A stretch of DNA of 64,000 bases from Podarcis bocagei (lineage: Eukaryota): the NCBI GenBank assembly GCA_964188305.1, contig OZ076893.1; one strand, given 5' to 3'. The notes under the pieces are model-generated. The model saw only the letters and a program-made list of their open reading frames with translations, was not told the DNA's origin and made no database searches. A program made the position numbers and the translations under genes. How positions within the stretch are numbered: the first letter of the stretch is position 1; every line of letters starts with the position of its first letter. Below, piece after piece: positions 18,905-50,203 of this stretch.

Positions 18905-21825
18905 TCACATGCAGATCACTTGTCTCCTGCAGACAGGAAAGGAGGTCCTCAGCACCCCACGGCCTTTGTCTCCAGCCACAGGGAGAAGCAAAGCCCACCC
19001 AGCACCTCCCTCCCAGGAGGGGCCACCAGCTGAGCTGCAGGCCACACAGAAGTTGCTGCTGTCCCCAGCTGGGACCCTTAGCCTTTTCCAGCTCTGGCAA
19101 ACTCCAGTGGGGGGAGCAGGCCCACAGGGGCTTCTGACCCCAAGCCCCCTCACCTATCCTCCTCAATGCTGGCCCCGTCCTCGTCGCGGGGGCCGGTCGC
19201 CTCCTCCTCCTCCGCATCATCCTCGCTCAGATCCATGTTCAGCTCATTTCCCGCTTCGGGGTGAGGGTATGTGGAGCCACTGCAGAAAGAGAAGCCCACC
19301 ACATTATGTCTCCCAAGGCCTCAAGCTGCCCTTTGGACCAGGAAGGGGACCCAGGGAGCAGGGGGTGGGGAGGCCTCAAAACCTGCCACTTTGGCAGGGA
19401 CCCTGACCTGATGGAACGGCAGGTGAAAAAGACAATCCGCTTCAACCGCTTGTTGTAGAAGAAGTAGTTGAAGGACCACAGGCTGCCCTCTTCTCCGAAG
19501 GGGTCTGAGTCCAGGTCCGGGTTGTAGCTACATTGGCAGAAAAAGCGGAATAATAATAATAATAATGATAATTTGTTATTTATACCCCGCCCATCTGGCG
19601 GGTTTCCCTAGCCACCCGGGCAGCTCCCAACAGAATATTAAAAATGCAATAAAACATTGCTCCTCTCGATGACACCTGCTACTCGTCTGTCGTGATTTCA
19701 TTCCAACAATGTTAAAAACTTCCTTAAAGAGGGCTGCCTTCAGATGCCTTCTAAAAGACAGCTAGTTGTTTATTTCCTTGACATCTGATGTGAGGGTGTT
19801 CCACAGGGCAGGCTGCTAGCAAAGCAGCACCCACCCACCCCTTGGTGCCTGAGAGCAGCACTGGGAGCCCACCTGTAGATGTCACACTCCGAGAGGCAGA
19901 TCTCCTGGTCCACAGCGTCCCACAGGTGGGGCTTCAGGGCGCTGAAATCCTCCCGCACAGCAGAAAAGAGGCTGCAGTTCACAGCGTTCACCACCTGAAA
20001 CAGACCCAGAGGGGAGCTTGGTGAGGGCCTGGTGCTGCAAAGAGGGAGGGGGTGCATGTGTACGTTTGGCCCCCACCATCCCTGCACTGTCCCCAGGTGG
20101 CTACAGCATGGCCCTGCAGCAGCTCAAGCGTGGGAGGCTTCAGGTAGACAGAACGGATGCAGCTCCTCCCAGTCCTAGACCAGGTGAAGGGGCCAGGGAA
20201 GCCCCAGCCTTGAGCTGGACTGCAGAGGGGCATCCTCCAAGAGATAGACAGGTGGGGCCTGTCCAGGACAGCAGATGCAGGTTCCAGCGGGAGAGCTGGG
20301 TGGGATCCAGGGGCATCCAAGCTGGAAAAGGGACCAGGTATGCCAACGGGTTGGCCTGATCCATCCCATACAGGTAACCTTTCCATCAGTCTGCAAAAAT
20401 CCTAGGAGGCAGGAAGCAGGTCCTCAGTAGCACCACCAACCGCAGGGAGGGGTTTCATGCCAGGCGGATGTTTCCCCACCCCAAGCATCTCAGGGGCAAA
20501 CAATGCCCCTTTCTCTGTGGGAAGAGGGCAAAGAATGGGAGGGAGATGGAGCCCTTGGGTCAACGTGAAGGAAATCCTGCTCCACCTTCTCTAGAGGCCA
20601 CTCCCTGGGACCCTGGCACTTTTCAATGCAGTGTGTGTGTGGGGGGGGAGGTGGAGAAGAATTGGAAGGCATCCATGCAAAAAGCAGTGCTGGAGAACTG
20701 CTATCACATGTGGGGCTGTGAGACCCGGGATGACAAGGAGGGCCAAGAGATCTGCTGACTTGTGTGGGGCCTGAAGGCCAGATTATCATAGCAGGGTGGG
20801 GGCTTACCCAGTTGAGACTTGGCTCCCGGCTGAATTCGTGGCTCTTGGCAGCGCTGAAGTCGTAGTCAGGACGGAAGGACTCGTTGAGGGTGGCTATCAG
20901 GTAGAAGAGGGTCTTGCGGCTGCATTTGTCACTGAGGGGGCCCTCCTCATCGCCACTTTGGCTCTTGCTGAGCCTAGCGCACAAGGGACAGGATGTGGTC
21001 AGTTACCTCCACCTGGAGGAAGCCGTGGGCATCAGGCCGTGGCCTTGGAATCTGCCATGTACTTTTCCCAGTGCTAAGGTGCAGGAAGATCTGGGCTGTG
21101 CGGAATCATCTTGACACAACAGCCTCAAAGCACCAGCTGAGAAAGGGCAGGGCCTGGGATGCTCCGGAGAACAGCAGCAGCATTTCATGTAGCATTAAAC
21201 CAAGAATGGGGGACTCCAGTGTTACTGGACTCCCAACTCCCATCGGCCCCAGCAAGCCGAGAACAGGAAGTTCTGAGTTCCCCCGGCAATATTTTTAATA
21301 TTTTATTGGAAGCCACCCAGAGTGGCTGGGGAAACCCAGCCAGGTGGGTGGGATATAAACAAACAACAACAACAACAATAATTATATGGTGAGGCTCTCC
21401 TGGCTTACAGAACTCTCATCCAGCCCACCGACCTGCAAGGCCAAGTGAAGCTGGTGATGATGAGCCAGCTGTGCCTCGTCTGTGTGGGGCGAGGAAGAGA
21501 CAGCGCATACCTGCTGGGGCTGATCCCGGTGGTTTGAGGTGGGGACAAGGCCTCAAGCACGTGGGGCTGCCCTTCCTGGCAGAACTGCTTGAAGAGGTGC
21601 TTGTCGTCCCCGGCCATCTTGCAAGAGTAGCTCTCAATCCTGAGGGAAGACAGGCAAGACTCAGCTGGAGGGGAGGTGGGGGTGGATCTCAGTTTGGAGA
21701 GGCACCCTGGGGGGCCAGTTCAGGAGCTGCCTTGCCACTCACCTGCCAATGATGTGTGCATCTCCCGTTTCCACCGTCAGCTGGGAGTTTAGGGCTTCAA
21801 AACTTGAGTTTTCCAACAGCTTCAT
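18905..21825 (-). CDS. MAF1: Repressor of RNA polymerase III transcription MAF1 (255 aa)
   Basis: Exons 21825-21743 ([11 protein letters not shown]), 21639-21511, 20973-20808 ([20 protein letters not shown]), 19994-19873, 19527-19408 ([19 protein letters not shown]), 19279-19154 (acidic tail), 18926-18905 (RQVICM*). All GT-AG and in phase; 768 nt. Confidence 0.97.
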
Positions 21826-23948: not shown

Positions 23949-24004
23949 AAAACCTACCTAGGATATATCCGCAGCAAAACCAGCGCAAATTCATTGAAAG
24001 GAAT

Positions 24005-24480
24005 GTTGTTGTTGTTGTTATTTAGTCGTTTAGTCGTGTCCGCCTCTTCGCGACCCCCTGGACCAGAGCACGCCAGGCACTCCTGTCTTCCACTGCCTCC
24101 CGCAATTTGGTCAAACTCATGCTGGTAGCTTCGAGAACACTGTCCCACCATCTCGTCCTCCTTTGTCCCCTTCTCCTTGTGCCCTCCATCTTTCCCAACA
24201 TCAGGGTCTTGTCCAGGGAGTCTTCTCTTCTCATGAGGTGGCCAAAGTCTTGGAGCCTCAGCTTCATGATCTGTCCTTCCAGTGAGCACTCAGGGCTGGT
24301 TTCCTCCGGAATGGATCAGTTTGATCTTCTTGCAGTCCATGGGACTCTCAAGAGTCTCCTGCAGCACCAGAATTCAAAAGCATCAATTCTTCCGTGATCA
24401 GCCTTCTTTATGGTCCAGCTCTCACTTCCGTACATCACTACTGGGAAAACCAGAGATTTAACTATACGGACCTTTGTTGG
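24005..24480 (-). mobile_element. BovB (RTE) LINE 3' fragment
   Basis: Minus-strand peptides VFPVVMYGSESWTIKKAD and FGHLMRREDSLDKTLMLGKMEG; (CAA)n tail. Confidence 0.9.
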
Positions 24481-26449: not shown

Positions 26450-27260
26450 CATCGCACGTGCCGTCCCCATAGATCTCTCGGAGGGCTTGGGCTGAGCGGG
26501 GTCCCCTCCTGGCCCGGAACCTGGGAGTCGGGCCGCGGTTTCCCCCCGGCGGCGGTGGGGAAGGGGACGGAGGCGCGCCGGAAGCGCCCCGCGGGGAGCC
26601 GCGCTCGGCTTCCGGTTCCGGGCGGCGACTCGATGGCGGCGGCGGCGGCGCCGGGCTGCTCGCCGTCCCCGTCGGGCCTGGTGCTGCTGGCCTCGGCCAA
26701 GGCCTGGGTGCCGCGCTCGCCGGACGCGCCCTCGGCCTCGCCGGCCGGCCGGGAAGCGCGGCGCCTCTTCCGGCTCCAGCTGAGCGCCGCGCCCGGCCCC
26801 GAGCGCTTCCGATTCGGCCTGAGGGGCGCGGCGGAGTCGGGGGGCGAAGCGGTGAGAGGGGACGGGGAGGGGGGAGGCGGCGGGACCCCTTCCCGGGTCG
26901 CCCCGGGCTTGGCGTCGCGCCTTCCTTCGCCAGGGTGCTTTTCCTTTCTGTGGGATGATGGCGCATGCTCCTCCTCCTCCTCCTCCTCCTCCTCTCATGC
27001 CCCCCAACAACAACCCTCCGAGGCCGGGCCCCAAGGTCTCGCCCAACCAACAACAACCCTGCGAGGTAGACCGAGGCCGACTGCCCCCCCCCAGGTCACG
27101 CCCACTGAGCTCCGTGGCCCAAGGGGGATTTGAACCCAGGCCCTGGTCCGCCCCTCTGGCCCTGCCGCACAGGCTTGTCTCGCCCGCTTACCAGAGGCGG
27201 CGGCTGCCTCCTTCGCCTCCTCCTCCTCCCTGCCTTTCTTCCCCACAGGCCGTCGAAGCT
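26450..27260 (+). promoter_or_regulatory. CpG island: promoter and exon 1 of the SHARPIN-locus gene
   Basis: CpG-rich; E-box CACGTG at 26455-26460; ETS-like CCGGAAG near 26578 and TTCCGG near 26610, just upstream of ATG 26633. Confidence 0.8.
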
Positions 27261-30200
27261 GCTGCCCCAACCCGTCAGACCGGAGTGGGTGCATTTCAGC
27301 TGCTGGAGGGGGCTGCCCAGCCGGGGGAAGCAGCGCCAGGGGCAAAGCCCAGGCTGTTTGGGGCCTTCTAGCCGCTGTCAGTCTTTGCTGGGAAATGTCC
27401 CTCTTCTCGGAGTGGCGCTGAAGGCTTGCCTCTTTCACAAGAGGCCAGCAAAGTCATCCCTTCCTGTACAGGATCTGTTTCTCCCCCACCCACCCCACAT
27501 TTCACAGGATGTCTCAATGTATGAACAATGCTTAGAAAAAGAATTAGGTGCTTCCTAAGTCTTTATTAATTAAGAACAAACAACATCCAGGGATTTGATC
27601 ATAGAATATCCAGCTCATATATCCAAGCAAGGATCATGGTAGCAGCTTGTTTTCGTTTCCCTTGCACTTCCATTTTGTTAAATGCACTGATTTCTTGGAT
27701 CAAGTAGAAAGGCCTCGACATACCTTAGTCCATTGTGTGCTTCAAGTATGCCTGCTCATAATGTACTACTCATTAAAAACAATGACATCCCCACCTTTCA
27801 GTTGCATACAGCAGTACCCAAAATGGCTTGCAGTCAACATGTTTAACAACAGTTTGAGTCCTTGAGACGGTATTGGTGATCCAGCTCAAGGCATGCTTGG
27901 GGGAAACTGATTATCTGGACCCATTTAAATCCAGTTTCAGGCCTGGGCGCAGCACTGAAACTGCTTTGGTTAGTGGCGTTTGTGGATTGTGCCTCATACC
28001 TTCTTGTTACCCCTATAACACCCTGCCTACCACACACAGGCCTCGCACTCATCATGAGGGGCTGTAAACAAATAGGGCAGAACAGGAAAGGACCTGCAGG
28101 CTCCTCTTGCTTCTGCCAGTGGAGTTCTAAAGACACCCCCTCCCTCGATGCAGTATCCAATGTTCCTGCAAGAGACTTGGGGGTTTTCGAAAGAGGACTG
28201 GACAAATTCACAAAGGAGAGGGCTATTGATGGCTGCTAGTCATAATGGCTAAGCTCTGCCTTTGCAGTCAGAGGCAGTAGTGCTTCTGAATAGCAGTTGC
28301 TGGAAACCACAGGAGGGGAGAGTGTGGCTCTTGGGCTTGAATCCTGCTTGTGGCTTTCCTGGAGGCATCTAGTTGGCCGCTGTAAGAACAGGGTTCTGGA
28401 CTAGATGGGGCATTGGCCTGATTCAGCAGGTTCTCCTCCTGTTCTTAGGAGTTCCACTTGCAGAATGGAACTTTCCCCTCCTCTCTCTCCCCTGCAGTCT
28501 GCCATGCACCCTCAAAATCAGCTCTGGGGGGATGGGAGAACCTCTCAAGCAGTTTTGCACAGAGGGAGGAGAGGGGCAAGTCCTGTTGTGCAAGGAGAGG
28601 TCCATCCTTTGAGCTCTTCAGCAGTGGGAGCAGCTTTCAGCATGAGCGCTGATGAGGGGGAGCCTGATGAGACTTGGCTGAAGAACAGAATGGGTGCTTG
28701 GACCCCCGTGTTGCTTGAGGTAAAGAGGCCTCAACAAGAGCTGGTTGGGGCTATTTGACTTTGGACTCGCCCACTAATGCTTTTCTTCCCCCAGGGCCTT
28801 GTTGAGTACAACCTCAGAGACATTTCCTATGAGGTGAAGACTGCCACGTGTCATGAGCTGAAGTTCTTAGCCCGCCCAGACGACCCCCTTGTTTTCCACT
28901 TTGAGGATGAGCATGAGGCACAGAAGTGGTGGACAGTCGTCAGCAGCTCCCTCCAGGAGCTCCAGAAAGGTCAGCTCCTGCCCCGGAAGGCACTTACAAT
29001 GCCAGGGTCCGGCTTCTGGTAGTGAGAGAGGGCATGGCTTGAATCCTGCTTCCAGGTTTCCCACAGGCATTGGATTGGCCCCTGTGAGAACAGGATGCTG
29101 GACTAGCTGGGCCATCGGCCTGATCCAGCGGGCTAGTCTGATCTTCTTATGTTCTGTGTCTGCCTGCTGGAGCACTTCTTCTAAAGTCTCTTCTCTCCCC
29201 AGCTACTGAGGGAAGCGGTTTGCTGACAGGACGGCCTTCTCCCCTTCCCTTGGCACTTTTCAACTCTCTGTCTGACATCGATGTCTCCCTGCCCTTGGAG
29301 CTTGCCAGGAAAGGTGGGTGGCTGATGGCACAGGACACTTGTCCACTGGCAGTGTGCCCTTGAAGACACATCATAAACATTACTCAGCTGCCAGGAAATG
29401 TGATGTTTGCATATCTGAAATTTCCTTTTACCTGTATCGGGTTAGGCAGCTGGTTTTGTTGCACAGTGGTAATGAGGAGTGGGTGCATTTTGTGAAGTAT
29501 TGTTGAGAAGGTGAATTGAGAGAGAACTTGGTTTCAGTAATTGCCCAAAATCTCCCCCATATTTCTATGGCTTAGAAGCCATTTTGGCAAGCAAGAGGTA
29601 AACAGATGAATAAATAATATCTACTTAAAAAGCAAGCCATGTTTACACTTCCTGTTGAACCTTTCCTTCCCACTGACGCTAATCCACTGGAATGGGGGTT
29701 TCATTTGGTGCCCATGCAAGTATTCAGTTATTGATTGCATTAAAAGCACTTGGTTTGTTTTATTTCCTTCTATGTTGACCTCTTCCCTGGGTGCCTGCTT
29801 GATCCACCACCTCAGTGGTGAGGAGTCACTGGAAATACCCAGGGGCCACATGCAGTTAAGTAGGAGGCCGCATCCAGGGCTTGGGTTGGAGGCTCCCCAG
29901 CCGTGCTTTGCGGTTTGCCCTGTATAACTCACCAGAGCAGCATCAGTGTCCTGAAGGAGTGGCTTCTTGAGCTGGATGAGGAAGAGGGGGCTGCCCTTGC
30001 CACCCAGATTGTGAGCCCCTCCAACTGCCCCAACTTTTTTCATTTTTTTTTTAAAAGTAAAACAGCCAGTCAACATAGATGAAGAGAAGAGTGTCATATA
30101 TTGCATTCCTATCCCACCTTTCCTCAAGGTGGTTGACACAGGTCCCCTCCTCCCCATTTTATCCTCGCAGGAACCCTTTGAGGTGGGTTAGTCTGAGGGT

Positions 30201-33200
30201 GAATGACTGGCCTAGTTCCACACCCGGTGAGCTTTGTGGCTGACTGGGGATTTGAGCCCTGGCCTCCCAGGTCCTAGCCTGAGTTCTGCTGCAACTGAAG
30301 ACAACTAAAACCAATCCAACAGCTGCACGAGGCCTCTGTGTGACTAAGAAAAGAGCAGGGTACAAATGCTCAAAACAGAATAAGATAAGAAAGCTTTTCC
30401 AACTCACTTGGAAGGAAGTCTTGGGTCTGACCACCTGCAGCAGCAAGCCAAGTGTGGGGCAGGGGTGGGGCTGCTTTTGAGAGCTCTTGCTCAGCAGTGG
30501 GTGGCTCCCTAGGAGGTTTTCCATCGCAGACCTTGGAGAAGGGCGGGAGGCGGGAGGCTTGCCCGAGATGGGGGGTGCACAACTTGACCTGGCGGCTCAT
30601 GCCTGGCTTTGTCTCCTCCTCAGAGGACCTGGCGCTCCACCTGTCCACTGCTATTGAGCTCGGGGACGAGGAGGAGGCGATGCGCTGTGCCACGCTGCTC
30701 GCCCAGCAACACGCGGCTCTGCGGATCCTGCTGAAGGAGTCCTGCTACCCCACAAGCGAGATCAGGTGGGAGCGGAGGGCTGGGCAGGGAGCCGGTGTCT
30801 CTGGAGGAGGCTGGGTGGGTTAGGCTGGGTGATTTGGGGCCAATCCCCTGCACGCCTCCTCTTCTGAAGATGGCCGGTTGCGGGACACGCTGTGCTCATC
30901 TCACTGGCTGATTCCCTTCCTTTTAGCATGAAGGTGCAGGTGGAAGACGCCACTTGCTCAACGAGCATCACCACCCGCGTCCACACGTACACCACCATTG
31001 CAGGGCTCAGGCAGAAGGTAACCCGGGCACAGCTTTTCAGAGGCGGGGATGCTGTCTTCTGGCTCCCTCACTGGGGCAGCTTCTGGGGCAAAATGCCAAC
31101 GACTGCCTGGCTGCTTGGCCTGCAGCAGAAGCCTTCAGACTCCCACTGACCCCGTCTCTGCTTCCCCCAGGTCTTTCAGGATTACGGATTCCACCCCAGC
31201 GTCCAGCGCTGGATTATTGGCCAGTGTCTCTGTGTGGATGACCGAACCGTTGGCTCTTACGGGATTCAGAAGGACGGAGACACAGCCTTCCTCTACCTGC
31301 TCTCGGCAAAGGGTGCCCACCTCTCTGAGCAGCGCTTCAAGGAGGACAGGGACTGGGTGGTGCTGCAGCCGCCCCCCTCGCCCCTGGCGGACAACACGGA
31401 TGCCAGGCACAAATTCAGCACCTTGCCCACCTGCCTGCCCAAGAAAAGTGAGTGGGGGCCTCTTAGTTGGGGGGGGGGAGGGGAAGAGGTTGCATCTGGC
31501 TAGAAGCAGGGGGTTCATTTTGGAACCCTCAGAACAGGTTACACCTCTCCCCAACGGCTTTTCTGCATGCAAGTCAAGGCAATTTAAATCAGGAAAACAA
31601 AAGACGAAATTCAGTTACTGAAGTCCAGTTTCTCATTTATTCATATCTTACCTCCTCTGTGGTGCAATTCTGACCACTAATTTACAACTAAATAGTATAT
31701 TGTTAACGTTGTTTTATCCTTCCAGCCAAGCTTTGCATCTCTTTCTTACATCTGGATACACAGCTTGTGACAATGTGTGGTTAAAGGTCCAATCCTAAAA
31801 CAGGGTATAAATTCATAAATGATGCTAATAGGAATCTGTCCCTTTGTGCTGGGGGTGGGCTTAGGTTTGGCTGAGGGAGGGAGGGACATAGGAACTTGTA
31901 TGCTGAGCACTCTTAGCTCCTCCCGCTTCTTGTCCCTGTTGCTCCTTCTTGCTTTGCTCTGCCTTGGACCACCCCCCAAAAGAGGAAACCAACAGCACAA
32001 AAATGACCTGCCCATGACCAGTATAGTGGTACCTCTGGATACGAACGGGGTCCGTTCCAGAGCCCCGTTTGCATCCTGAAGTAAACTTAAGGTGCGTGTG
32101 TGTGGGTCGTGTTTTACCGCTTCCACGCATGCGCGTGATGTCATTTTGTGCGTCTGCACATGCGCGAGCGGTGAAACCCAGAAGTAACACGCTCCGTTAC
32201 TTCCGGGTTGTCACGGAGCGCAACCCGAAAATATTCATCCCGAAGCTACTTCAACCCGAGGTCTGACTGCAGGTGGCAGTCAGGCCCTTTGGGAGTCAGG
32301 AGGACTTTATTTCCTGAAAAGGAAATGTATCTGATTTTTGTTAGAGTGCAAATCTGCATACCTGAGAAATGATCCAACCAGTTTTTCATGTTCATAGAAA
32401 GGCCTCCTTTAATGTATCTGGGAGAGTTTAGAGATTAACCATAGGGACAACATTTATTTGTTTAACTTTATTTAAACAAAGCTTGAGAACAATCATTAAA
32501 ATCTCTCCAATAGTTAACATGCTTATATTCAGACTGATCGATATTAACCTAGCTTTTGTTTAAGAGAAACTTTGCACTTGCGAAGTTCTTAGACCTCCTT
32601 CTTCTAAGTCTCCTTCTTCTGTTGCAGGTGTGAAAAATTCTAACAGGAAGAGGGATGTCGGTGAGAGCAGCCACTTCCTGGGAAAATTCCTCCCTGGCCA
32701 CTCGCGAGCCCCTCCGCCCCCGGCTGCCGCCCCTCCTCCCTCTCCTGTGCCGGTATGTACTCTCTCTGCTAAGTGGTGAAACTCAAGGCAGCCGTCTCGC
32801 CATATATATGCCCCCTCTCTCTTTCCCAGTCCCTGGGCTCCCTGTGGCCTTGTCTCCCCTCACCCCGTAGTCTGCTCAAGAAAGGGGCCAGAGCACCTTC
32901 TGGGGAGGGGGGCCTCATCACCCAGCAGGAAGCACAAGTGGGAGAGGGGTGGTCCTGGGGCACGTGGCTGCATCCTGGGCTATCCTTGCCGGCGCCACGT
33001 CTAGCGGCCTCTTCCTCTTTCTCCTCCTCATCTCCCATTGCAGACTGGCTGGTCTTGCCCCACCTGCACCTTCATCAACAAGCCCACCCGGCCCGGCTGC
33101 GAGATGTGCAGCACAGACCGGCCTGCCAACTATGTGGTTCCCGGGAGCTACAGGCCGGATGAGGTGGAGCTGTGGCGGATGCAGCAGGAGAAGGAGGGCA

Positions 33201-36200
33201 TCTTACAGTACCAGAAGGTAGGTCTGGGTAGCTCCCTTCCTGTGCCTCACAGTCCACTGGAGAAGCTCCCTGCAGGGGTCTGGAGCTTTGCTCTGCTCCC
33301 AGCTCTCTTGGCTCTTTTCTCTAGCTCCCTCTCCTTATGCAGCTCCTTAATGTGGCGTTCCCAAAGCACAGGAAGGATTAGACTCTGATTAATAGAATAC
33401 ACACAAAGGCTTGACCAGCAAGACTCTGGGAGGAGTGTGTATAATAATTCCTGTCCACCCCCTTGGCCCAGGTCGTTTTATTCACAAAAGAACTTTTTAC
33501 ACAGTGCTCATAAGAACCAATCAGATTTCCTCTGAGCGTTTCAAAAAAACCCACGTGGGACAAAGTTAAAGTTAAAACTACAAAGAGCTAATTTCCTACT
33601 TGAGCATGCATATGTAATTCAGAGTAAATAAAAGAGGAAGCAAGGAGGAATGCTTTTAGGAAACTCCGGAGGTCATAAGCAGCAATAAACAGGAGAGGAA
33701 GGATAGGTAGTATTTACCATCTCCTTGTGAACGATTAACAAAGTACATCAAAGCTACCTTCTAGCTTTATGGCCCCGGATGCCTGATGCAGCAGCCGGCA
33801 ACTGGCCTGTGTCCTAGAATGCTGATACGTGCCTGTCAGGCAGAGAGAAAAGGGCAGGAGAGGGAAAATGGCTTAGATGTAGAAGCTTCTGGGATTGGAT
33901 CAGAAATTATTGTCAATGTATCAAACCCAGTCAACGCAATGTTTTCATCACGTACACGATGGCCTGATGCATCTTTTATAATTCCTCATAGTAATCCCAC
34001 CTCTGGATATTTGCACTCCTACACTTAAGAACCCCAAATGTGTCCTGCAGCAGCTGGATGAGGCCAAGGGGAGCCAGTCCAGCCCAGCCGGCTGTTGTCC
34101 TAGTGGACCACCAGCTGCCTCTTCTGGGAAGCCCACAGGCAGGACCTAAAGGCAGCAGCAGCAGCAGCACTCTCCCCACTTGCGATTCCTCCCAGCACCT
34201 GGTGTTATTCAGAGGCCTTTGCTGCCTACAAAAGCGGGCAGGAAACATCGTCATTGTGGCTGGTAGTGGTCCAAGAAGCCAGCTCCCCAGCTGTGTTCTG
34301 GAGGCTTTCAAAAGTATTCCCCACTTGAGAGGCACTTTCTGTTTCAAATTTGCTTGTAGAGTCTCCATGCAGATTCTTCTTAATTCTGGGATTTCTAATT
34401 AGATGATGATAGTAAGTTCAGCTTACTAAATTTATTGATAACTTCACACAACCGAACGGAGTCCCAAAGCTATTTACAAGAGAAGTGCTATAAATTTACA
34501 TCGTAAGAAATGTGCTAAAAAAGTGTGCATCCCAAATCACTTAAGTTCTGCCCTGGGGTAGGTTGCTGCCTGCCCAGAAGCCATTCTGGTCTACGAGTGG
34601 AGTATAAATTAAGGAACAAAACTGCTGAATGGGGTGGAAATGAACATGTCCTGCTTCCGAGGCTGCAGATGCCTGGAGTCCACGTTCAGGATGGTCCTGA
34701 GAGGGAGGTCAGGTTCCCCCTTCCCCTCTGTCATGGCCGACGTCACACCTCTGAGTTTAAACATCTTTGGGCACAATCTCTGCCTGCAAAGGAAGGGAGG
34801 GAGGAAAGAGCCCTGTACCTTTCTCATGAAGTTGTCTCCCAATGCCGTGGTGCTGTCAGCTGGTTGATGGATGGGGAGCTAAGGGTCTAACATACTGGCC
34901 AAATCCTGCTCCCCAACTATGTAGGTGATGTTTAGTTCTTGCTTGATTCATTTTCTTAAATAATGAGATACTAATTATGATTTGGTTGTCCCTTTCAATG
35001 TTTCGTCGGTGGTATATTTTTAGTGTATTGTTTTCATCACATTTCCTGTAAATACAAAAAACATGTTGTTGTCGAGTGCACCAGAAAAAGAATAGAATTT
35101 CAAAATCTCTCGGGCTCCGTCCTTCTCCTTCTGTGCTTTCCAAGGAGGGTGGGCTCTCAGGGAGGGCTGCAGTCCATTCTGGGGTGTGGTGGTGGTGGTG
35201 GTGGTGAAGGTGCATCAGGCTCCAGGCAGCAATCTCTGGCGGCGGCAGCAGTGGTGGCGGCAGCACCTGACGACTCTCTTCTCTTCTTTCTTCTTTCTCT
35301 TGTGGCAGGAAAAAGGAAGGAGAGAAGACGGTTCCGCTGTGCCCTGTGCCCACAGCCTGGGAACCCCGGACGACTTTATCCACCTCTCCTCGGAGTTCTC
35401 ATAGCCCTCCTCAGAGCCGGGGCCGCCATCGCTACCACTGCCCCTCCCAGCCTTGCAGTGGGGACGTGTGTTAGTCCTGGCTGCAGCACCAAGGGCTGCC
35501 AAGATGAGCCAAGCGGACAGTGAAGCCCAAGGGGCAGGGCAGGGGTGGGCTTCTGTGGCTGCCCCCCACCTTCCCCTGCTGAGAACAAGCAGCTGAGAGT
35601 CCTTGCTGGCCCTTGGCGGCTTCACTGGCTGGCCTTTGAGAAAGGCCATATTGGGGGGGGTGTGCTTTGAGAGCTCCCTGCGACAGCAGCAAGAGCTGCG
35701 TCCCACCTGAGCAACTTTTGGGGTGCAGCCATGCAACGTTTGTGGGTTTGCCTAGGCTCCCCCCTTGCCCCTCCATTCCACCTGGGTCTTGGAGTTCAGC
35801 CCATTTCCCAGCTCAACTGGCAGCCGCACAGAGCCTCCCTGCCTCTCGCTCATGGAAGACTGGAGCTGTGTGAGCCTCAGAGGCTGGAGCCAGGTTGGTC
35901 TCCTGGGCCACGAAAGCCCCTGCAGTGGGGCTGCCACTTGAATACCATGAGCTGTTCATAGGTTGTGATCCCCACCATGAAAATGTGTGTGTGTTTGTGC
36001 ACTGTTTGCCCAGCGGAGGCAGTCGATCTGCTGTATTTGACACTGTGCATTGGATCTGTGGGCTGCCTGCCCAACCCATGGAGCCCGTTGCCCTGCCAGA
36101 GCTTCCTTCCTCTTTGCCCCACAGTGCCTTCCTCCCTCATTTGCCTCTGGCTCTCCTCCGCTCTGCCCTCAGGCCTGCACAGCCAGGGTGTCGCTGCTGC

Positions 36201-38938
36201 TTGCCGGGAGCCTCCCGCTTGCTGGCTTTGTGCTCCTCGCTCCGTTGGGGCCTGCGTTGAAGGTCTCTCCTCCCTCTGCCCCCCATGGAGGCTGCTCTCC
36301 CCATGTGCCTTTGACCAGGAGAAGCCATGGCCTGCCCAGCCCCACAGGTCAGGCAGCGTTTGAACCGCAAGGCCAGGCTCTGCCTTGGGGACTTGCTTAT
36401 GCTGAAGCTGGACTAGAAAGAGAGACCCTCTGCCGTGATAGCACTTTGAAAGAGAAATGCTGTAACTCCCTCCCCTGAAGGTGGCTGTTTCTCGGTGGGT
36501 CAGGGGGTGCTGCCGCCTGAGCGTTGGGGGTCTGCCCCAGCTGCTGCTTGTCCCAGCCAGCAGATCTTGGAGCAAGTGGCTCCCCTCGCCGTGGGGCAGT
36601 CGTTGCTGCCCTGGCCCCTGATGGGGCAGCAAACGCCCTTCTCTCCCTCTCTGTACTGAACACTGATTATTCAGCAGCAGAAGTTTCGGGACCTGTTTTG
36701 AAATGGCTTGATTTCTGCATAACGTGTTTGTAAATTTGATTTTTAAAAAAATGAATTGGAGAGCAAATCCTTTGTTCTATTAAATGATTCATTTGGGCTT
36801 GACGGTCCATCCTGGTACTTCTCTGTAGTGTCCTTGATGGGGAAAGGGGGCAGGGGCTGTTCAGGAGGTATGCGTGTGGGTGGGGGGATGAGAGAGGGGG
36901 GGTCCTCCTGATCCAAATAAGTCTCCCCACTGTCCTCTCTGAGCCACAAAGTAGTGACTGAGGGGTCTCTGCTGTGAGCTTCCCCTCAAGAGAATTTCGG
37001 TGAGGCTCTCTTTGCCACAGACGGCCCTTTTGCCTACAAAGGAGTCGCTACAGCCACTTCAAGGGTCGGAGCAGCCTCACTGCTTCGGGGTACATAAAAA
37101 CAAGCCACCAAAAATGGGACAGCAAAAGAATAAAAACGTATCATAAAACTGAGCACTGCCTTAAATTGTTTGCCGGAACAAGGAAGTCTTAGTCATGTGC
37201 CTAATTTCAACTAGCAGGGAGTTCCACAAGTTCAGGCCCACTACACAGAAGGGGCAGGAATTAAGTTGTTGCATGGACAATGAGGTCTGCTTGCACATGG
37301 AGTTTTCCCCCTCCCTTCATATCCCTCACCCGCTAAATCTCTGAAGGGTTGGGGGATACCCCAGAATGTGTTCAGCAGCCCCCCAGAGGCGTGAGGGGAG
37401 AAGTCTTGTTGTGCAAGCAGACCCCCACACCTAGCACCACACTGGATTCCACCCAGTGTTTTATTCTGTCGCGGCTTTTAAAATTTTGCTAAGTTCTGCA
37501 TATTAAATATTTTATGACCTGCTATGAGACATTTTGCAAAAAGTGAGGCACAATTAAACAAGCATAGAGGAGGAGGGAGCCAGCAGAAAGCTCCTTCCGG
37601 GGGTTGGACTAGATGACCCCTGGGTTCTAACTCACTCAGTTCCATAATTATGTGAATGCTGCTGTGATGTGCTTGCCAGACATCTCAGGATCCCGATTCC
37701 CCAAGTGTTGGAGACTGAAAGCAGGAAGAAGCTGTCCTTCTCGTCTGTCGTTTCTAGAGCAGAGAGCCACTTGGAATGTAAACAAGCCCTGTAATAAAAT
37801 TGCAGAAGAATAAAGCACACCCACTGGGTTGGGTCAGCAGCAAAGGCCTTCACAGGCCTGAGCAAGCAGATCCGTCTTGGCAAGATCCTGCGGGTGTCAG
37901 TTGCCCTGGTCAGGGGAGGGTCTTCTGCAGGCGGTGAGGTCACCCCCTTTACAAAGTCTCGTTCTCCGCCTTGCCCCCTCCCCAAAACATGCATGCAGTT
38001 GCTGGACTGCCTTAGAGGGGGTGTTGCAAAAGGCCTCCTGAGATCAGGCACCCAAAGTGTGCATTATCTTCCAACATTCTTGCTGCTCTTCAGAAGGTGA
38101 TGCTTTGGGACACCACCTTCATTTTATGTCTCTTCCCAGAGCGTTTGTTCCAGAGTCTTGTATCCTAGTTTTCCCATCAGGCTTTTCGGGGGGGGGGACC
38201 TGGCACCTTCATTTCTGTCATGGACCGGCTGGATGCAGAGGAGTGGGGCGAGGCTCCAGCCAGGGAACCCCCAGAGGAAGAAGGCTCAGAGCCCGTGAAT
38301 TGGTGGTGGGACAAGGATGCCTGGTCAGAGGGAGCAGACTGGGAGCAGGAGGCGTTGGAGGCTGAAGAGGGAACAGGGCTTAGTGAGCAAGAAGAGGCTG
38401 TGGCAGAGAGCAGTCCAGAAGCAGAGGCAGGAGAGGAGGGGAGACCGGCTGCTGAAGAGTCCAGGGGGTCTCTCCCTCCTACCGCAACCAGCTCCCCTCT
38501 CCGCTGGTCTCCCAGAACATGCAGAGAAACGGAAAGGGCAGAAGAGCTGCCACAGTCTCCGCTTGCTTGAAACAAACTCTGGAGAGGAGGGGACTTTGGC
38601 AGCTGTGGGAAGGCGGGGGTCCTCAGTCCTTGCAACTGCCTTATTGGGGCAAGACCCACTGGGGAAAGTTGCTGGGATCACTGCGCCTGAGCTGTTTTGG
38701 TCCCTTGAATAAAGAGTTAACTTCAACTATACTGGGTTTTTTTTAATTGCTGACCTTCAACCGACTCCGGTTCGTGATAATATCTTTAGGCACCAGGCAA
38801 AAATGTTCCTCCTCCACTGTTAAAACAATCTGCGGCCTGTTAAATGTGCCTGGGGGTGGGCAGGTTGTGTTTTTCTTGTGTTATGCATTTTGCATTTTTA
38901 TGTTGTAAACCACCCTCTGATCTTTGGAGGATAGGTAG

Positions 38939-38992
<54 letters not shown>

Positions 38993-41900
38993 TATAATAG
39001 TAATGGGGCTTCTGCCCCTTTTTGCAGAGTTAGCTGACCCTCCAAATCTCAGCAGCCTGGGTGGTGGGTGTGGCCAGGCGGAGCCCCTACCCACCTTTAA
39101 CCAGGGGACTGGGCAACCACCACCTGCCCCTCTTTGCCCCCTCCAGGCCTTGGAGCAAGAGCGGCAGCAGAACTTCCAGCAGTTGCAGCAGCTGGACGAG
39201 GCGGCGCTGGTGCCCAACCGGGAGGAGATTGAGTGCCGCATCTGCTACCTGAACGTGGAGCCTGGCGAGGGCGTCCTGCTTCGGGAGTGCCTGCACAGCT
39301 TCTGCAGGTAACCTGGCCTGCCTGGGGCAGGAGGGAGCAGGGGTGGGGGTGGAGGAAGGAAGGAAGGGAGGGTTCTGTGGCCTGACCCCGCTGCCGCCCC
39401 CCCTTCTCCCTCTCCAGGGACTGCCTGCGCCAGCTGATCAACTGCAGCGAGGAGCCCCAGGTGGCCTGTCCCTTCCGGGACGACTCCTATGCCTGCAGCA
39501 GCCACCTCCAGGACAGGGAGATCCGGGCGGTGAGTCCGCAAGGCTCAAGGATCCCTCCGGCCGGGTCCCTTGGGCAGGCTGGCGGGGCAGCTCAGCTCCC
39601 CCTTGTCCTGCCACGGTCGTCAAGAGCGGTTGGAGATGCAGAGTGGCATTTTGAGCAGGCCAGCTCCAGAGGTCTTTTTTGCAGAGCTTGGTCCTCCTGC
39701 AGACGGAGGGAGTGGAGGAGGCTGCCATGGCCACATGCTCCTTTGATTTCCACCCCCTTCCGGCCACGGAAGCCAAGGGGTGCCCCCCGGCCAGCCCATG
39801 CCCTGCCCTCCCTCTCTCAGGGGCTCTGAGCCGGCTCCCTGGTCTCCGCAGCTGGTGTCGTGGGACGAGTACGAGCGCTTCCTGGAGCGGCGGCTGGCCG
39901 TGGCCGAGAGCAGGGCCCAGAACAGCTACCACTGCCAGACGGCCGACTGCCTGGGCTGGTGCATCTACGAGGACGACGTCAACGAGTTCCGCTGCCCCAT
40001 CTGCTGGGCCCTCAACTGCCTCGTCTGCAAGGTGAGCCCAGGGGACTGGCTATGGGGCTGGAGGCCCACAGGTGGGTCTTGGAAAGAATGAAGGAGAAGT
40101 GCAGGCAGACTAGATGATCCTTGGGGGTCCCTTCCAACTCTACAGTTCTATGATTCTGGGGGGGGGGCTAGGGTGCTGAAGGTGGCCAGAGCACAGCTGC
40201 CCCCTTCCTCCAGCATCTTGGAGGTCTCCCTCCCCCATTCCGTCTTCTGAGCTGTCAGCAGCCTCCGGACTGTTTTCTAGCATCTTTCAGAAACACTGGA
40301 GGGGAGAAATCTCCTTGAAGGAATCAAGTTAATGTATTTTTCGCTCCATAAGATGCACTAACCATAAGACACAGCTAGTTTTTAGAGGAGGAAAACAAGA
40401 AAAAAAAATTCTGAATGAAAGAGTGGATGTATGATTTTTGAGGTTCATGCTGTGGCCACAGACATGTGATTTGACGGTGAATTTGGGGTAGCCCAATGCA
40501 AAAAACCTGAGGATCCATGGGCTTTTACCTCCTGGACAGCCTCCTTTATCACTCCCGATCGCTTGCTGATCAGCTGCTTCCTTTAACTCCCACTTCCCTC
40601 TTTGTTTGTTTAAGTGTCTTTTCCTTAGCTGGAGCAGTTTTTTGCTCCTCTTCTTTTAATTTCTCTCCTCATTGCTTTAGGATTCCTATTTCCTCTTCTT
40701 GCAAGTTCGCTGTCTTTAATAATAATAATAATTTATTATTTATACCCCGCCCATCTGGCTGGGCTTCTCCAGCCACTCTGGGCAGCTTCCAAAAAAATAT
40801 TAAAATACTGCAATACATCAAACACTAAAAGCTTCCTAAAAGTCTGGTAGTTGTGGTTCTCTTTGACACCTGGTAGGAGGGCGTTCCACAGGGAGGGTGC
40901 CACTACCGAGAACTTCCTTTGCATCCTGGCCCCATGCTTCAGCAGCCCCTGGGGCTCCTGGGCACCGGAGGGCAAGGGAGGTGGTCACGGTAGGGGGCAG
41001 CCTGGGTTGACACATGCAAAGAGCCAGTTTGCAGGGGAAGGGCAAGGCCCCTGGGGGATGCTTCACCACATAAAAAGGCCCTGCAGAGAGGTGTAAGAAC
41101 ATAAAGAGAATTTGCTGGATCCGGCCAATGGGCCTCCTAGTCCAGCCTCTCCAGAGTGGACAAGCAGATGCTCCAAAGAGGAAAGCAGGATCTGACAAGA
41201 GCAACTCTCTCATCTTGCGGGTTCCAGAAACTGGTCTTCAGAAGCATCACTGCCTCCGACTGGCGGCTGAGCAGAGCCCTCCTGGCTGGGCACCATCAAC
41301 AGTCCTGCCCTCCATGAATTTCCATCCATCTTGGTGGCCGTCCCTGCCTCCTGCGGGTGGGAGGTCCACAGTTTAACTAGGTGCTGCCAAGCTCTCCATC
41401 TCCAGGTTGTGGCAGCTTTTGACTTTCCAAGAGCGACAGTTAAAATTGGTGTGAGGCGATGCCTATTCTGCCGTCTGTACGTGTCGGCGTGGCTTAAGAC
41501 GCCTCGGCCACTCGGGGAGGGTCCTGGGGCTGCTGCCCACCCCCAGGCCAGTTTGAGCAGCAGAAAGGAACCCTTTGCAGGGACGCCAGGGGTTTGATTC
41601 TCTGCCCTCCACCCGCAGGCCATCCACGAGGGCATGAACTGCAAGCAGTACCAGGACAAGCTGCAGTTCCAGGCTCACAATGACGCTGCTGCCCGGGAGA
41701 CCAGCAACATGCTGAAGGTGAGCTGGCCAGGAGGGGAGGGGGCTCTATTTCACGGCAGGAGCTGGGGCCTGCCCGCTTCTTCCCACCCCAATGAAACGTT
41801 CAAAGCCCAAGTTCCTTGGCATGATATTCAGCCTTGTTGGCTGGGCTGTGGGCACCGGCCTTGGGATACCTCGAGGGGATCAATGCTGGGGGGGGGGAGA

Positions 41901-42766
41901 TGGGGAGCAGCTCAAAGGGACTGGACAAGGGCCTGTTTTCCCCCTGCCCCAAGACGGGGCTGACGGTCTCCACATGACAGGGGGTTGGACTAGATGACCC
42001 GTGGGAGCCCTTCCCCTCTATGGCTCTATGGCCACCCTCTTTCTGTCTCCGCCAGACGCTGGTGCAGCTAGGAGAGGCCATGCACTGTCCCGTCTGCCGC
42101 ATCGTGGTGCAGAAGAAGGGGGGCTGCGACTGGCTCCGCTGCCCTGTCTGCCAGACGGAGATCTGCTGGGTGACCAAGGGGCCGCGCTGGGGGCCTGGGG
42201 TAAGCGCGGAGGGAGGGAGGGGGCTCAGGACGGAAGCTGGGGCGGGGGCTGGCACACCAGACAGGAGGAGGGGCGAGAGCCAGGCTTTGCTTCCAGAAGG
42301 GACTGAGGGGGGGAGCCTGGACGAAAAGGGGGGCTGGCTGGTTAGCTGCTCTCAATCTTCACAGGGGGGCAGCCAACCCGTCCAACAGATGACGTGGCCC
42401 AGAGTGCTTTGCAGTGTGCAGAGGGTATCCCAGTAGAGAGATAAATGGAGGTGGTGAGGGCGGCCAGAGGATGGGAAGTTTTAAGGGCTTTCTCAGAGGG
42501 AGATGGACTGTGTGCTGAAGCAAGTCTGAGGCCAGCAATGCCCTGCCTTGTGGACTTTGGGAGACAGGCGTCTTGGGAAGGGGGCTTGGATGCCTCGAAA
42601 GCACCAGATCCTTGGGAAGCTCCACTCTGCAGAACTCCCGGGCGGCTGGTCTCCCCCTGATGTGCTTTGTCCTCCTCCCTGGCAGGGTCCCGGTGACACC
42701 AGCGGAGGCTGCCGGTGCAACGTGGATGGGGAAAGGTGCCACCCCCATTGCCAGAACTGCCACTGA
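26633..42766 (+). CDS. SHARPIN: SHARPIN-locus protein with a full HOIL-1L/RBCK1-type RBR domain (PH-LTM-UBL-NZF-RING1-IBR-RING2, 696 aa)
   Basis: 14 GT-AG phase-consistent exons: 26633-26851, 28795-28969 (PH; [11 protein letters not shown]), 29203-29313, 30624-30765 (LTM; [22 protein letters not shown]), 30927-31017, 31171-31447 (UBL; [11 protein letters not shown]...[11 protein letters not shown]), 32628-32752, 33044-33217 (NZF; [10 protein letters not shown]...GCEMC), 39147-39307 and 39418-39529 (RING1), 39852-40031 and 41619-41717 (IBR), 42056-42199 and 42686-42766 (RING2, ending CHPHCQNCH*). 2091 nt; AATAAA at 43299-43304; lies between MAF1 and CYC1. Confidence 0.9.
32024..32269. mobile_element. 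Tigger/pogo-like MITE
   Basis: Termini (C/T)AGTGGTACCTC...GAGGTCTGACTG; inverted homolog of 46483-46728. Confidence 0.75.
33351..34023 (-). mobile_element. Solo LTR (673 bp) just after the NZF exon, antisense to the SHARPIN-locus gene
   Basis: TG...CA termini; TSD CTTAA at 33346-33350 and 34024-34028; reverse-complement homolog of 54220-54889. Confidence 0.8.
35309..35404 (+). CDS. Candidate alternative terminal exon A of the SHARPIN-locus gene (469-aa isoform without RBR)
   Basis: Long polypyrimidine tract CTCTCTTCTCTTCTTTCTTCTTTCTCTTGTGGCAG; read in phase 0 after the NZF exon it gives [31 protein letters not shown]. No transcript evidence available. Confidence 0.45.
   Translation, partial: EKGRREDGSAVPCAHSLGTPDDFIHLSSEFS
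38181..38570 (+). CDS. Candidate alternative terminal exon B (acidic, Trp-rich tail; 567-aa isoform without RBR)
   Basis: Acceptor TTTTCCCATCAG; open for 129 codons in phase 0 ([22 protein letters not shown]...PQSPLA*); AATAAA at 38708-38713 followed by a G/T-rich tract. Confidence 0.5.
   Translation, partial: AFRGGGPGTFISVMDRLDAEEWGEAPAREPPEEEGSEPVNWWWDKDAWSEGADWEQEALEAEEGTGLSEQEEAVAESSPEAEAGEEGRPAAEESRGSLPPTATSSPLRWSPRTCRETERAEELPQSPLA
38938..39004. repeat. (AAT)n microsatellite
   Basis: Direct reading; similar tracts at about 14888-14947, 46990-47054 and 57655-57712. Confidence 0.95.
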
Positions 42767-43642
42767 GCGCCTGCCAAAGGGGCATCAGATGCTGCCAGGA
42801 CTCCCATTGGCAAGGAAGGAGCCTCTGGACCCAGATGAGAAGCGGCCCCTTGGAAGCCGACTCTGGGGAGAGGCCTCAGCAAGGCTGGCTGCTCCCTCCC
42901 CAGACCTTAGAGGATGCAGCAGATGAAAGACCCACCCGCCCCACCCACTGCGGCTGCAGCAGATGCTCTGCCCCCCACTCCCTGCACTGACCTCCGAAGG
43001 GCGGCCACGCTCCCCTGCCTGAGGGAAGAAGGGGCTGCTTTGGCCCTACCCTGCCTCCGCCCCACTGTGCCTTTGAGCCCATCCCTCACCCCTTTTGCAC
43101 TACCAGAACCTCACTCCGCGACCCCCTGGCCAAGGAGACGGGGCTCCCCAAAAGGGGTCCCCCTCCTGGAAGCACCCTCGCTTCAACTGACAGCCCCCGG
43201 CGTGGGGTGCTAAGCTTTGGGGGGGCAATATCAGCACCAAGGAAGGGGGAAGGTGCCCAGGATGTATGCTGCTGCACAGGAGGGGTTAAAACCCCTTCAA
43301 TAAAAAAGAAAAAGTATAAACGCAGGGCATGCGCAGGAGATTTTTTCCGGGGTGTGCGTGTGTGTAACAGCCACTCAAGACAATCCATACGATGTACTAC
43401 CTGGATTTCAACACAGACACCAGCCGCTTATTTCTGGTTGAAGAAATGCGTTTTATTGGGTGCCCACCCAGGGTCCTCTTCCCAAGGCTTTGTGGGTGAC
43501 CGAACGGATGGAGACGTTAAATAACAGCAAATGCATGGAGACGAGCGCCTGTCCGCCTGCCAGTCTGTGCATACATTCCCAGGGCAGTAGAGGCAGCGGA
43601 GCGCAGGCATCAGAGAGAGGTCCGCCCCACCGGCAGCATGGG

Positions 43643-48596
<4,954 letters not shown>

Positions 48597-49549: not shown

Positions 49550-50203
49550 GGTGGGCCCATCACATTGCAAACAGAAGGGGAAGAAATGGAGGCAGTGAGA
49601 GGTTTTACTTTCTTGGGCTCCATGATCACTGCAGATGGTGACAGCAGTCACGAAATTAAAAGACGCCTGCTCCTTGGGAGAAAGGCGATGGCAAACCTAG
49701 ACAGCATCTTAAAAAGCAGAGACATCACCTTGCCAGGAAAGGTCCGTATAGTAAAAGCTCTGGTTTTCCCAGTAGGGATGTATGGAAGTGAGAGCTGGAC
49801 CATCAAGAAGGCTGATCGCCGAAGAATGGATGCTTTTGAATTCTGGTGCTGGAGGAGACTCTTCAGAATACCATGGACTGCAAGAAGATCCAACCTCTCC
49901 ATTCTGAAGGAAATCAGCCCTGAGTGCTCACTGGAAGGACAGATCTTGAAGCTGAGGCTCCACGACTTTGGCCACCTCATGAGAAGAGAAGACTCCCTGG
50001 ACAAGACCCTGATGTTGGGAAAGATGGAGGGCGCAAGGAGAAGGGGACGACAGAGGACGAGATGGTGGGACAGTGTTCTTGAAGCCACCAGCATGAGTTT
50101 GACCAAACTGCGGGAGGCAGTGGAAGACAGGAGGGCCTGGCGTGCTCTAGTCCAGGGGGTCACGAACAGTCGGACACGACTATAAACGACTAAACAACAA
50201 CAA
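49550..50203 (+). mobile_element. BovB (RTE) LINE 3' fragment with an open 206-codon RT tail
   Basis: FTFLGSMITADGDSSHEIKRRLLLGRKAM...MYGSESWTIKKADRRRMDAFEFWCWRR...; (CAA)n tail; closely related to 24005-24480. Confidence 0.92.

Follow-up and report, generated by a model that had tools for sequence, protein, structure and literature searches.

What does the gene at the SHARPIN locus encode in a vertebrate that is not a mammal? Present knowledge of the complex that assembles linear ubiquitin chains (LUBAC) comes almost entirely from mouse and human, in which SHARPIN serves purely as an adaptor and the only accessory ligase is HOIL-1L, the RBCK1 product. The stretch studied here (the window) comprises 64,000 nucleotides from the lizard Podarcis bocagei (assembly GCA_964188305.1, contig OZ076893.1), and a first-pass annotation proposed that its SHARPIN-locus gene joins a PH domain, LUBAC tethering motif (LTM), UBL and NZF to a complete RING1-IBR-RING2 (RBR) ligase in 14 in-phase exons. 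We conclude, with a probability of roughly 0.85, that this gene is a SHARPIN ortholog whose predicted long isoform of 696 aa combines the adaptor half with a HOIL-1-type RBR, and that it probably also produces a 469-aa isoform.

Gene Model and Domain Content

Guided by homologs, we rebuilt the gene from its open frames and candidate splice sites as 14 exons on the + strand (26633-42766), with all introns GT-AG, all exons in phase, a coding sequence of 2091 nt and a protein of 696 aa. This independent rebuild arrived at the same start (26633), stop (42766) and junction between exons 8 and 9 (33217>39147) as the first-pass annotation. The model contains no stop codons or frameshifts, its splice sites are all canonical, and no run of N (no assembly gap) occurs in 26-43 kb, the sole N run of the window being at 3380-3518 (139 bases). 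A CpG-island region around the start codon (26501-27000, + strand; GC 0.78, CpG observed/expected 0.97), the putative promoter, is the only CpG island in 24-46 kb apart from those of the flanking genes.

The first eight exons encode the adaptor half. The Sharpin PH domain is divided between exon 1 (26633-26851; donor GCG/GTGAGA), which holds the ATG and the first half and matches Pfam Sharpin_PH weakly, and exon 2 (28795-28969), which holds the second half and matches both Sharpin_PH (E 6e-21) and the solved human SHARPIN PH domain, 4EMO, in a PDB search. Exon 3 (29203-29313), a linker, is identified by its splice sites and by its match to the Phrynocephalus sharpin linker, and exon 4 (30624-30765) encodes the LTM (Pfam E 8.5e-21). 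The UBL is split between exon 5 (30927-31017), placed from splice sites and the spliced model, and exon 6 (31171-31447), which also includes a linker and scores 66.6 bits against the SHARPIN UBL versus 54.1 against that of RBCK1 in the PDB search. Exon 7 (32628-32752), another linker, rests on homolog guidance and splice sites, and exon 8 (33044-33217; donor AAG/GTAGGT) encodes the NZF (Pfam Zn_ribbon_RanBP, the RanBP zinc finger, E 9e-9) with the helix that follows it, ending in phase 0. The SHARPIN-group order of Sharpin-type PH, LTM, UBL and NZF is thus present in the lizard gene.

The remaining six exons encode the ligase half. Exon 9 (39147-39307) starts in phase 0 with a helix and the first half of RING1, matching RING families, and exon 10 (39418-39529) provides the second half of RING1. 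The IBR is encoded by exon 11 (39852-40031), its end and the helix before RING2 by exon 12 (41619-41717), RING2 with the putative catalytic Cys646 and Trp648 by exon 13 (42056-42199), and the C-terminal zinc cluster, His696 and the stop codon by exon 14 (42686-42766). Exons 10 and 12 are supported by splice sites and by the exon boundaries of RBCK1 in Anolis, which are identical for exon 9 as well. Exons 11, 13 and 14 match the IBR, RING2 and C-terminus of human RBCK1 in the PDB search (E 1.9e-20, 5e-23 and 5e-9), and Pfam exon scans also report RING, IBR and IBR_1, the last corresponding to RING2. These exon-wise Pfam and PDB matches bear out the domain content proposed in the first-pass annotation. 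An ESM Atlas search with the PH region returned only generic PH clusters, with scores under the meaningful level.

A Probable Single Gene Across the Longest Intron

The two halves are separated by intron 8, which at 5.9 kb is the longest intron of the gene, and homologous proteins run unbroken through the join. When the PH exon was searched with phmmer against 1.8 billion representatives, proteins of 560-726 aa were returned, two of which combine Sharpin_PH with LTM, NZF, RING and IBR in Pfam (composite proteins, hereafter). One of these two, a sturgeon protein of 718 aa that also has the UBL, is collinear with the model from end to end at 54% identity and is continuous over the exon 8/9 join. 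A search with this sturgeon protein gave 516 clusters, the best 120 of which are about 650-745 aa long, almost all with Sharpin_PH, and come from ray-finned fishes, the coelacanth, a sea turtle and birds. Closer to the window, Podarcis lilfordi "sharpin isoform X2" aligns without gaps to model residues 188-696 at 98.6% identity, and a Podarcis muralis protein is identical over 307 compared RBR columns; two substitutions are common to both Podarcis proteins relative to the window, which shows the window to be closely related rather than identical. At identities of at least 58%, 27 retrieved protein models cross the 33217>39147 junction. Logan contigs of about 3 kb carry fish open reading frames (ORFs) of about 700 aa that extend from PH to RBR; as these contigs are far shorter than the 26-kb gar gene, we take them to be spliced mRNA.

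The length of intron 8 raises the alternative that there are two genes here, a short SHARPIN formed by exons 1-8 with a terminal exon inside intron 8 (exon 8a, described below), followed by an RBR-only gene formed by exons 9-14 with its own promoter. Both a terminal exon and an ATTAAA hexamer are conserved within these 5.9 kb, so transcription could plausibly stop there. However, no CpG island or other promoter-like island was found in 33-39 kb, and exon 9, which continues the phase 0 end of exon 8, has no start codon and no in-frame Met ahead of RING1. The position of intron 8 is kept in relatives, where it is also long (garter snake 5.7 kb, owl 2.9 kb, turtle 13.6 kb), and the equivalent RBCK1 intron is an ordinary internal intron. 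A gene nested in intron 8 was considered and rejected, since the largest ORFs there belong to no credible Pfam family. The conserved intron, the ATG-less exon 9 and the lack of an intronic CpG island or ORF family therefore make either a misassembly or an independent RBR gene unlikely. Given in addition the PH-to-RBR fish ORFs on short contigs and the congruent trees obtained from the two halves (below), we consider the two-gene explanation very improbable. A misassembly or an independent promoter between the NZF and RING1 exons had been named in the first-pass annotation as what would overturn its reading; neither an N run nor a promoter island was seen in intron 8, and the sturgeon protein is collinear across the join.

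Integrity of the Ligase Domain

A single gene might nevertheless carry a dead ligase, with the RBR exons a decaying remnant and the lizard, like mammals, using the adaptor half only. Such decay has precedent in that the RBR was lost in mammals and in one teleost paralog, and a short isoform of the lizard gene appears to exist. To this reading the intact frames and splice sites described above are already opposed, and the residues of the RBR speak against it further. The lizard model was aligned with 39 sequences of RBCK1 and 15 of composites. It keeps each of the 35 NZF and RBR Cys/His columns conserved in RBCK1 and is identical at 110 of 116 columns whose invariance in RBCK1 reaches 90% or more. 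Nearly every sequence has an RBR of exactly 237 residues. The RING1 C3HC4 zinc ligands (C468, C471, C486, H488, C491, C494, C509 and C518) are all conserved relative to the 39 RBCK1 sequences, and the IBR is present between the RINGs with every Cys/His from 556 to 597 conserved. The catalytic center of human HOIL-1 consists of Cys460, Trp462 and the C-terminal His510, the last acting as general base in the ubiquitination of hydroxyl groups (PMC11962058). The lizard GGC646-D-W648 and the terminal ...CQNCH696-stop align with human C460, W462 and H510.

Selection on the two halves is similar. By the Nei-Gojobori method, the RBR exons give a ratio of non-synonymous to synonymous substitution rates (dN/dS) of 0.13 in the comparison with snake (dS 0.53) and 0.29 in that with owl, near the values of 0.11 and 0.26 obtained for the N-terminal half. 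The RBR exons are under purifying selection. Loss of function of the RBR in this lizard is thus given little credence here, and the preferred reading remains a gene whose RBR is intact.

Orthology With SHARPIN and Relationship to RBCK1

Is the gene then an ortholog of SHARPIN, or of RBCK1 (HOIL-1L)? Many fish and turtle annotations name the composite RBCK1, and the lizard RBR shares 53-55% identity with true RBCK1. The locus speaks otherwise. Like mammalian SHARPIN, the lizard gene lies between MAF1 (coding exons at 19770-21617, - strand, in head-to-head orientation; Pfam Maf1 E 4.9e-18 and 2.7e-10) and CYC1 (coding exons at 44133-45006, - strand, in tail-to-tail orientation; Pfam Cytochrom_C1 E 2.6e-19 and 9.5e-12). 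The order in the Ural owl is Maf1, sharpin (699 aa), Cytochrome c1 and Gaa1, and the gene is followed by CYC1 in snake and turtle and by GPAA1 (Gaa1) in gar. The armadillo gene table lists Maf1, a SHARPIN of 403 aa with a span of 3.6 kb, and Cytochrome c1, and the gap between SHARPIN and CYC1 is only 1.1 kb, so six RBR exons would not fit. True RBCK1 adjoins a RabGAP-TBC gene in Anolis, a locus other than MAF1/CYC1.

The phylogenies agree with the locus. Built by maximum likelihood from the NZF and RBR of 55 sequences, one tree splits at 100/100 into a composite clade, comprising ray-finned fishes, coelacanth, frog, turtle, birds, squamates and the window, and an RBCK1 clade, comprising sharks, rays, chimaera, ray-finned fishes and lungfish together with amphibians, mammals, alligator, turtles, tuatara and squamates. 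The second tree, built from LTM-UBL plus NZF (49 sequences, including seven placental-mammal SHARPINs), again sets RBCK1 apart at 100/100. It groups the seven mammalian SHARPINs, whose branch is long (0.69), with the composites, without fixing where inside that clade they belong. The teleost short sharpins (P0040, P0346, P0342, P0352 and P0378; 399-445 aa) are nested in the teleost composites at 99/94. With true RBCK1 forming its own clade, squamates included, and the lizard gene possessing a Sharpin PH domain, flanked by MAF1 and CYC1 and clustering with mammalian SHARPIN, the proposal that it is an RBCK1 ortholog appears exceedingly improbable. Synteny and phylogeny instead support the lizard gene as the positional and phylogenetic ortholog of mammalian SHARPIN, with a HOIL-1-type RBR that is intact as judged by its sequence.

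Because mammalian SHARPIN is orthologous by synteny and trees to an RBR-bearing composite gene, it has lost its RBR, and by the placements in the LTM-UBL-NZF tree the RBR was lost at least twice, on the lineage leading to mammals and in a duplicate confined to fishes. The loss in mammals had been proposed in the first-pass annotation and gains support from the MAF1/CYC1 synteny and both trees. The UBL and RBR trees called for there both separate the composite from RBCK1, with mammalian SHARPIN on the composite side in the tree that includes the UBL, and the expectation that the architecture is not unique to this species proved sound, as it is common to fishes, birds and other squamates. For the garter snake, the annotated "sharpin" model is 511 aa long without a PH domain, yet PH exon 2 is found upstream on the same contig (L001 6550-6720) at 75% identity; the snake gene is therefore a full composite too, with a truncated annotation.

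The gene structure of RBCK1 points to a common origin. Exon boundaries of Anolis RBCK1 are identical to those of the window gene for exons 8-14, and the paralogs SHARPIN and RBCK1 therefore descend from a multi-exon gene with NZF and RBR. No PH exons were found in the Anolis RBCK1 gene or in the 10 kb upstream of it, and RBCK1 has no PH domain, shark sequences included. An Aplysia immunome paper reports a single HOIL1 gene with one isoform that lacks the RBR, and is silent on a Sharpin PH domain.

Birds present a further observation. All bird proteins retrieved (P0193, P0195, P0199, P0206, P0211, P0215, P0300, P0341 and P0424), whether named HOIL1, RBCK1 or sharpin, are of the composite, SHARPIN-locus type, with best local matches of 48-73% identity to the composite (71-73% where the match covers only the RBR half) versus 37-55% to true RBCK1. 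No bird was found in the true RBCK1 clade among the retrieved proteins, though alligator, turtles and squamates are present. Birds may lack RBCK1, or bird assemblies may miss it, and the SHARPIN-RBR isoform may be the only HOIL-1-type ligase of birds.

An Alternative Terminal Exon Within Intron 8

When intron 8 is compared with that of the snake, only two blocks align, the first of which (35262-35418) also aligns with owl. This block contains a candidate alternative terminal exon, exon 8a (35309-35404, + strand), with a pyrimidine tract and CAG acceptor, a phase 0 start, and 31 codons followed by TAG. As exon 8 ends in phase 0, splicing of 33217 to 35309 would yield a 469-aa isoform without the RBR. 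The length and stop position of exon 8a are unchanged in snake, owl and turtle, its ratio of non-synonymous to synonymous differences (pN/pS) is 0.24-0.37 overall and lower in both conserved ends, and a relative of the exon is present in the gar intron. The corresponding intron of Anolis RBCK1 yielded nothing that resembles exon 8a.

Several sequences from other species use this exon. Protein models of king cobra (P0312) and Xenopus laevis (P0338) join exon 8a straight to the NZF exon, and two RNA-derived sarcopterygian contigs (L003 and L004; SRR6291290 and SRR6291289) consist of spliced exons 1-8, exon 8a, a stop codon and a 3' untranslated region. The same lizard gene thus probably also makes an adaptor-only, SHARPIN-like isoform of 469 aa. 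Furthermore, a tail that resembles exon 8a (RREDGS...RSLD..LNLSGDLC) terminates the 403-aa SHARPINs of armadillo and a bat as well as one dog isoform, which makes it probable, though only probable, that mammals retained the short isoform.

An ATTAAA hexamer (36779-36784, + strand), about 1.4 kb downstream of exon 8a, is conserved in the second snake-aligned block and is a candidate poly(A) signal of the short isoform. Beyond the stop codon of exon 14, an AATAAA hexamer occurs at 43299. The last residues of the exon 8a peptide, DDFIHL (DDFVYI in another species), form an acidic-aromatic motif that we take, speculatively, to resemble an LC3-interacting motif.

Proposed Function

By analogy with mammalian SHARPIN in LUBAC, the conserved UBL of the long isoform would dock it on the UBA of HOIP, while the LTM, likewise conserved, would pair with HOIL-1L and the NZF would bind ubiquitin chains. 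The RBR would then take ubiquitin from an E2 onto Cys646 and, as in human HOIL-1, pass it to hydroxyls of Ser/Thr or sugars with the help of Trp648 and His696. Through the long isoform LUBAC could in this way gain a second active site of the HOIL-1 type, for mono-ubiquitination by ester linkage. The short isoform would serve as the classical adaptor, and the balance between them would be set by the use of exon 8a and intronic polyadenylation versus splicing on to exon 9. Since squamates also have a separate true RBCK1 elsewhere, a squamate LUBAC with three RBR proteins is conceivable.

Four points weigh against our interpretation. First, the presence of long and short isoforms in this lizard is deduced from conservation and from the models of other species, and likewise we infer from sequence the expression of both isoforms, their E3 activity and their membership of LUBAC in this animal. 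Second, domains were scored exon by exon in Pfam and PDB and on homologs, rather than on the spliced 696-aa model. Third, exon 8a resembles the tail of mammalian SHARPIN over a short stretch of about 28 residues. Finally, the separate true RBCK1 is shown by sequences of other squamates, not of this genome.

With these points in mind, we hypothesize, at about even odds, that SHARPIN in non-mammalian bony vertebrates is a two-output locus, where use of exon 8a, an old exon with an intronic poly(A) site, would yield an adaptor and splicing on to exon 9 an ester-forming E3, and that mammals kept the short form after deletion of the RBR. Such a locus is described in no paper of the searched literature.

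Repeats in and Around the Locus

An inverted repeat pair, with one copy in intron 8 (33351-34023) and the other at 54220-54889, shares 75% identity over about 700 bp and is probably an interspersed repeat. Two ORFs, one between MAF1 and the gene (23954-24289, - strand) and the other beyond CYC1 (49565-50185, + strand), are related through the common stretch HLMRREDSLDKTLMLGKMEG...RTRWWDSVLEATSMSLTKLREAVEDR.AWRALVQGV, and we presume that they resemble C-terminal parts of a LINE-type retrotransposon ORF. An (ATA)n microsatellite lies at 38940-38990, just upstream of exon 9, and long Ile-run ORFs near 14.8 kb and at 46.9-47.1 kb suggest similar (ATA)n repeats there.

Novelty and Implications

The composite gene is already known as an annotation, being present in RefSeq, UniProt and Ensembl in hundreds of species, among them many fishes, birds and reptiles, so the value of the present analysis lies in interpretation and not in discovery; exon 8a is new here. 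Public names for this one ortholog are inconsistent, varying between sharpin (birds, squamates), RBCK1 (fishes), RBCK1-like and HOIL1. Zebrafish shrprbck1r, which we take to stand for "sharpin and rbck1 related," is placed in the composite group by assumption from its name. That name turns up a single time in the searched literature. We believe this to be a ZFIN name, in which case curators presumably noticed the relationship between SHARPIN and RBCK1.

No literature on the composite architecture, the mammalian RBR loss or the alternative exon was found in full-text searches, which did not extend to the zebrafish Sipl1/Rbck1 paper of Landgraf (2010), and no functional study of non-mammalian composites was found in the searched literature. 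Neither "species" nor "evolutionar" occurs in a 2022 SHARPIN review, which mentions zebrafish twice, both times for a knockdown phenotype.

The comparisons made here show adaptor-only SHARPIN to be a derived mammalian state, and show that the SHARPIN gene of fishes, amphibians, turtles, birds and squamates has a HOIL-1-type center under selection; an adaptor-only isoform is probably a further product of this gene in these groups. Work in zebrafish or chicken on LUBAC, or on ester-linked or glycogen ubiquitination, therefore cannot presume the mammalian division of labor. The two independent losses of the RBR, in mammals and in the teleost duplicate, provide a natural experiment on the role of a second RBR.

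Comparison With Known Systems

The closest counterparts of the lizard gene are the annotated non-mammalian "sharpin" proteins and the fish "RBCK1" proteins of about 700 aa, which have the full architecture and form one ortholog group, of which the window gene is another member. The teleost short "sharpin" proteins (399 aa in Astyanax, 445 aa in Chanos) share PH and LTM by Pfam and mostly the NZF, end soon after it without an RBR, and in some cases have a start like that of exon 8a (EKG[KR]R). Unlike the lizard gene, however, they are fish-specific duplicates that lost the RBR independently of mammals, and so are not orthologs of the mammalian loss.

HOIL-1L/RBCK1, an RBR E3 ligase whose product is oxyester-linked ubiquitin, resembles the lizard protein in its LTM-UBL-NZF-RBR order, its zinc ligands and its center of Cys, Trp and C-terminal His, but belongs to a separate paralog clade at another locus, without the PH domain and, in Anolis, without an exon 8a-like sequence in intron 8. 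The lizard gene lies outside the true RBCK1 clade, and its neighbors are MAF1 and CYC1 in place of the RabGAP-TBC gene.

Mammalian SHARPIN (SIPL1) shares with the lizard gene the locus between MAF1 and CYC1, the PH-LTM-UBL-NZF order and the LTM-UBL-NZF clade, and the lizard UBL is nearer to the SHARPIN UBL than to that of HOIL-1L. The mammalian protein differs in being 370-403 aa long and ending shortly after the NZF with no RBR, while the predicted long isoform of the lizard has 258 more residues that comprise a helix, RING1, IBR and RING2. A SHARPIN of the mammalian type, non-catalytic and ending after the NZF, thus does not describe the long isoform of the lizard, whereas the predicted exon 8a isoform would fit that description.

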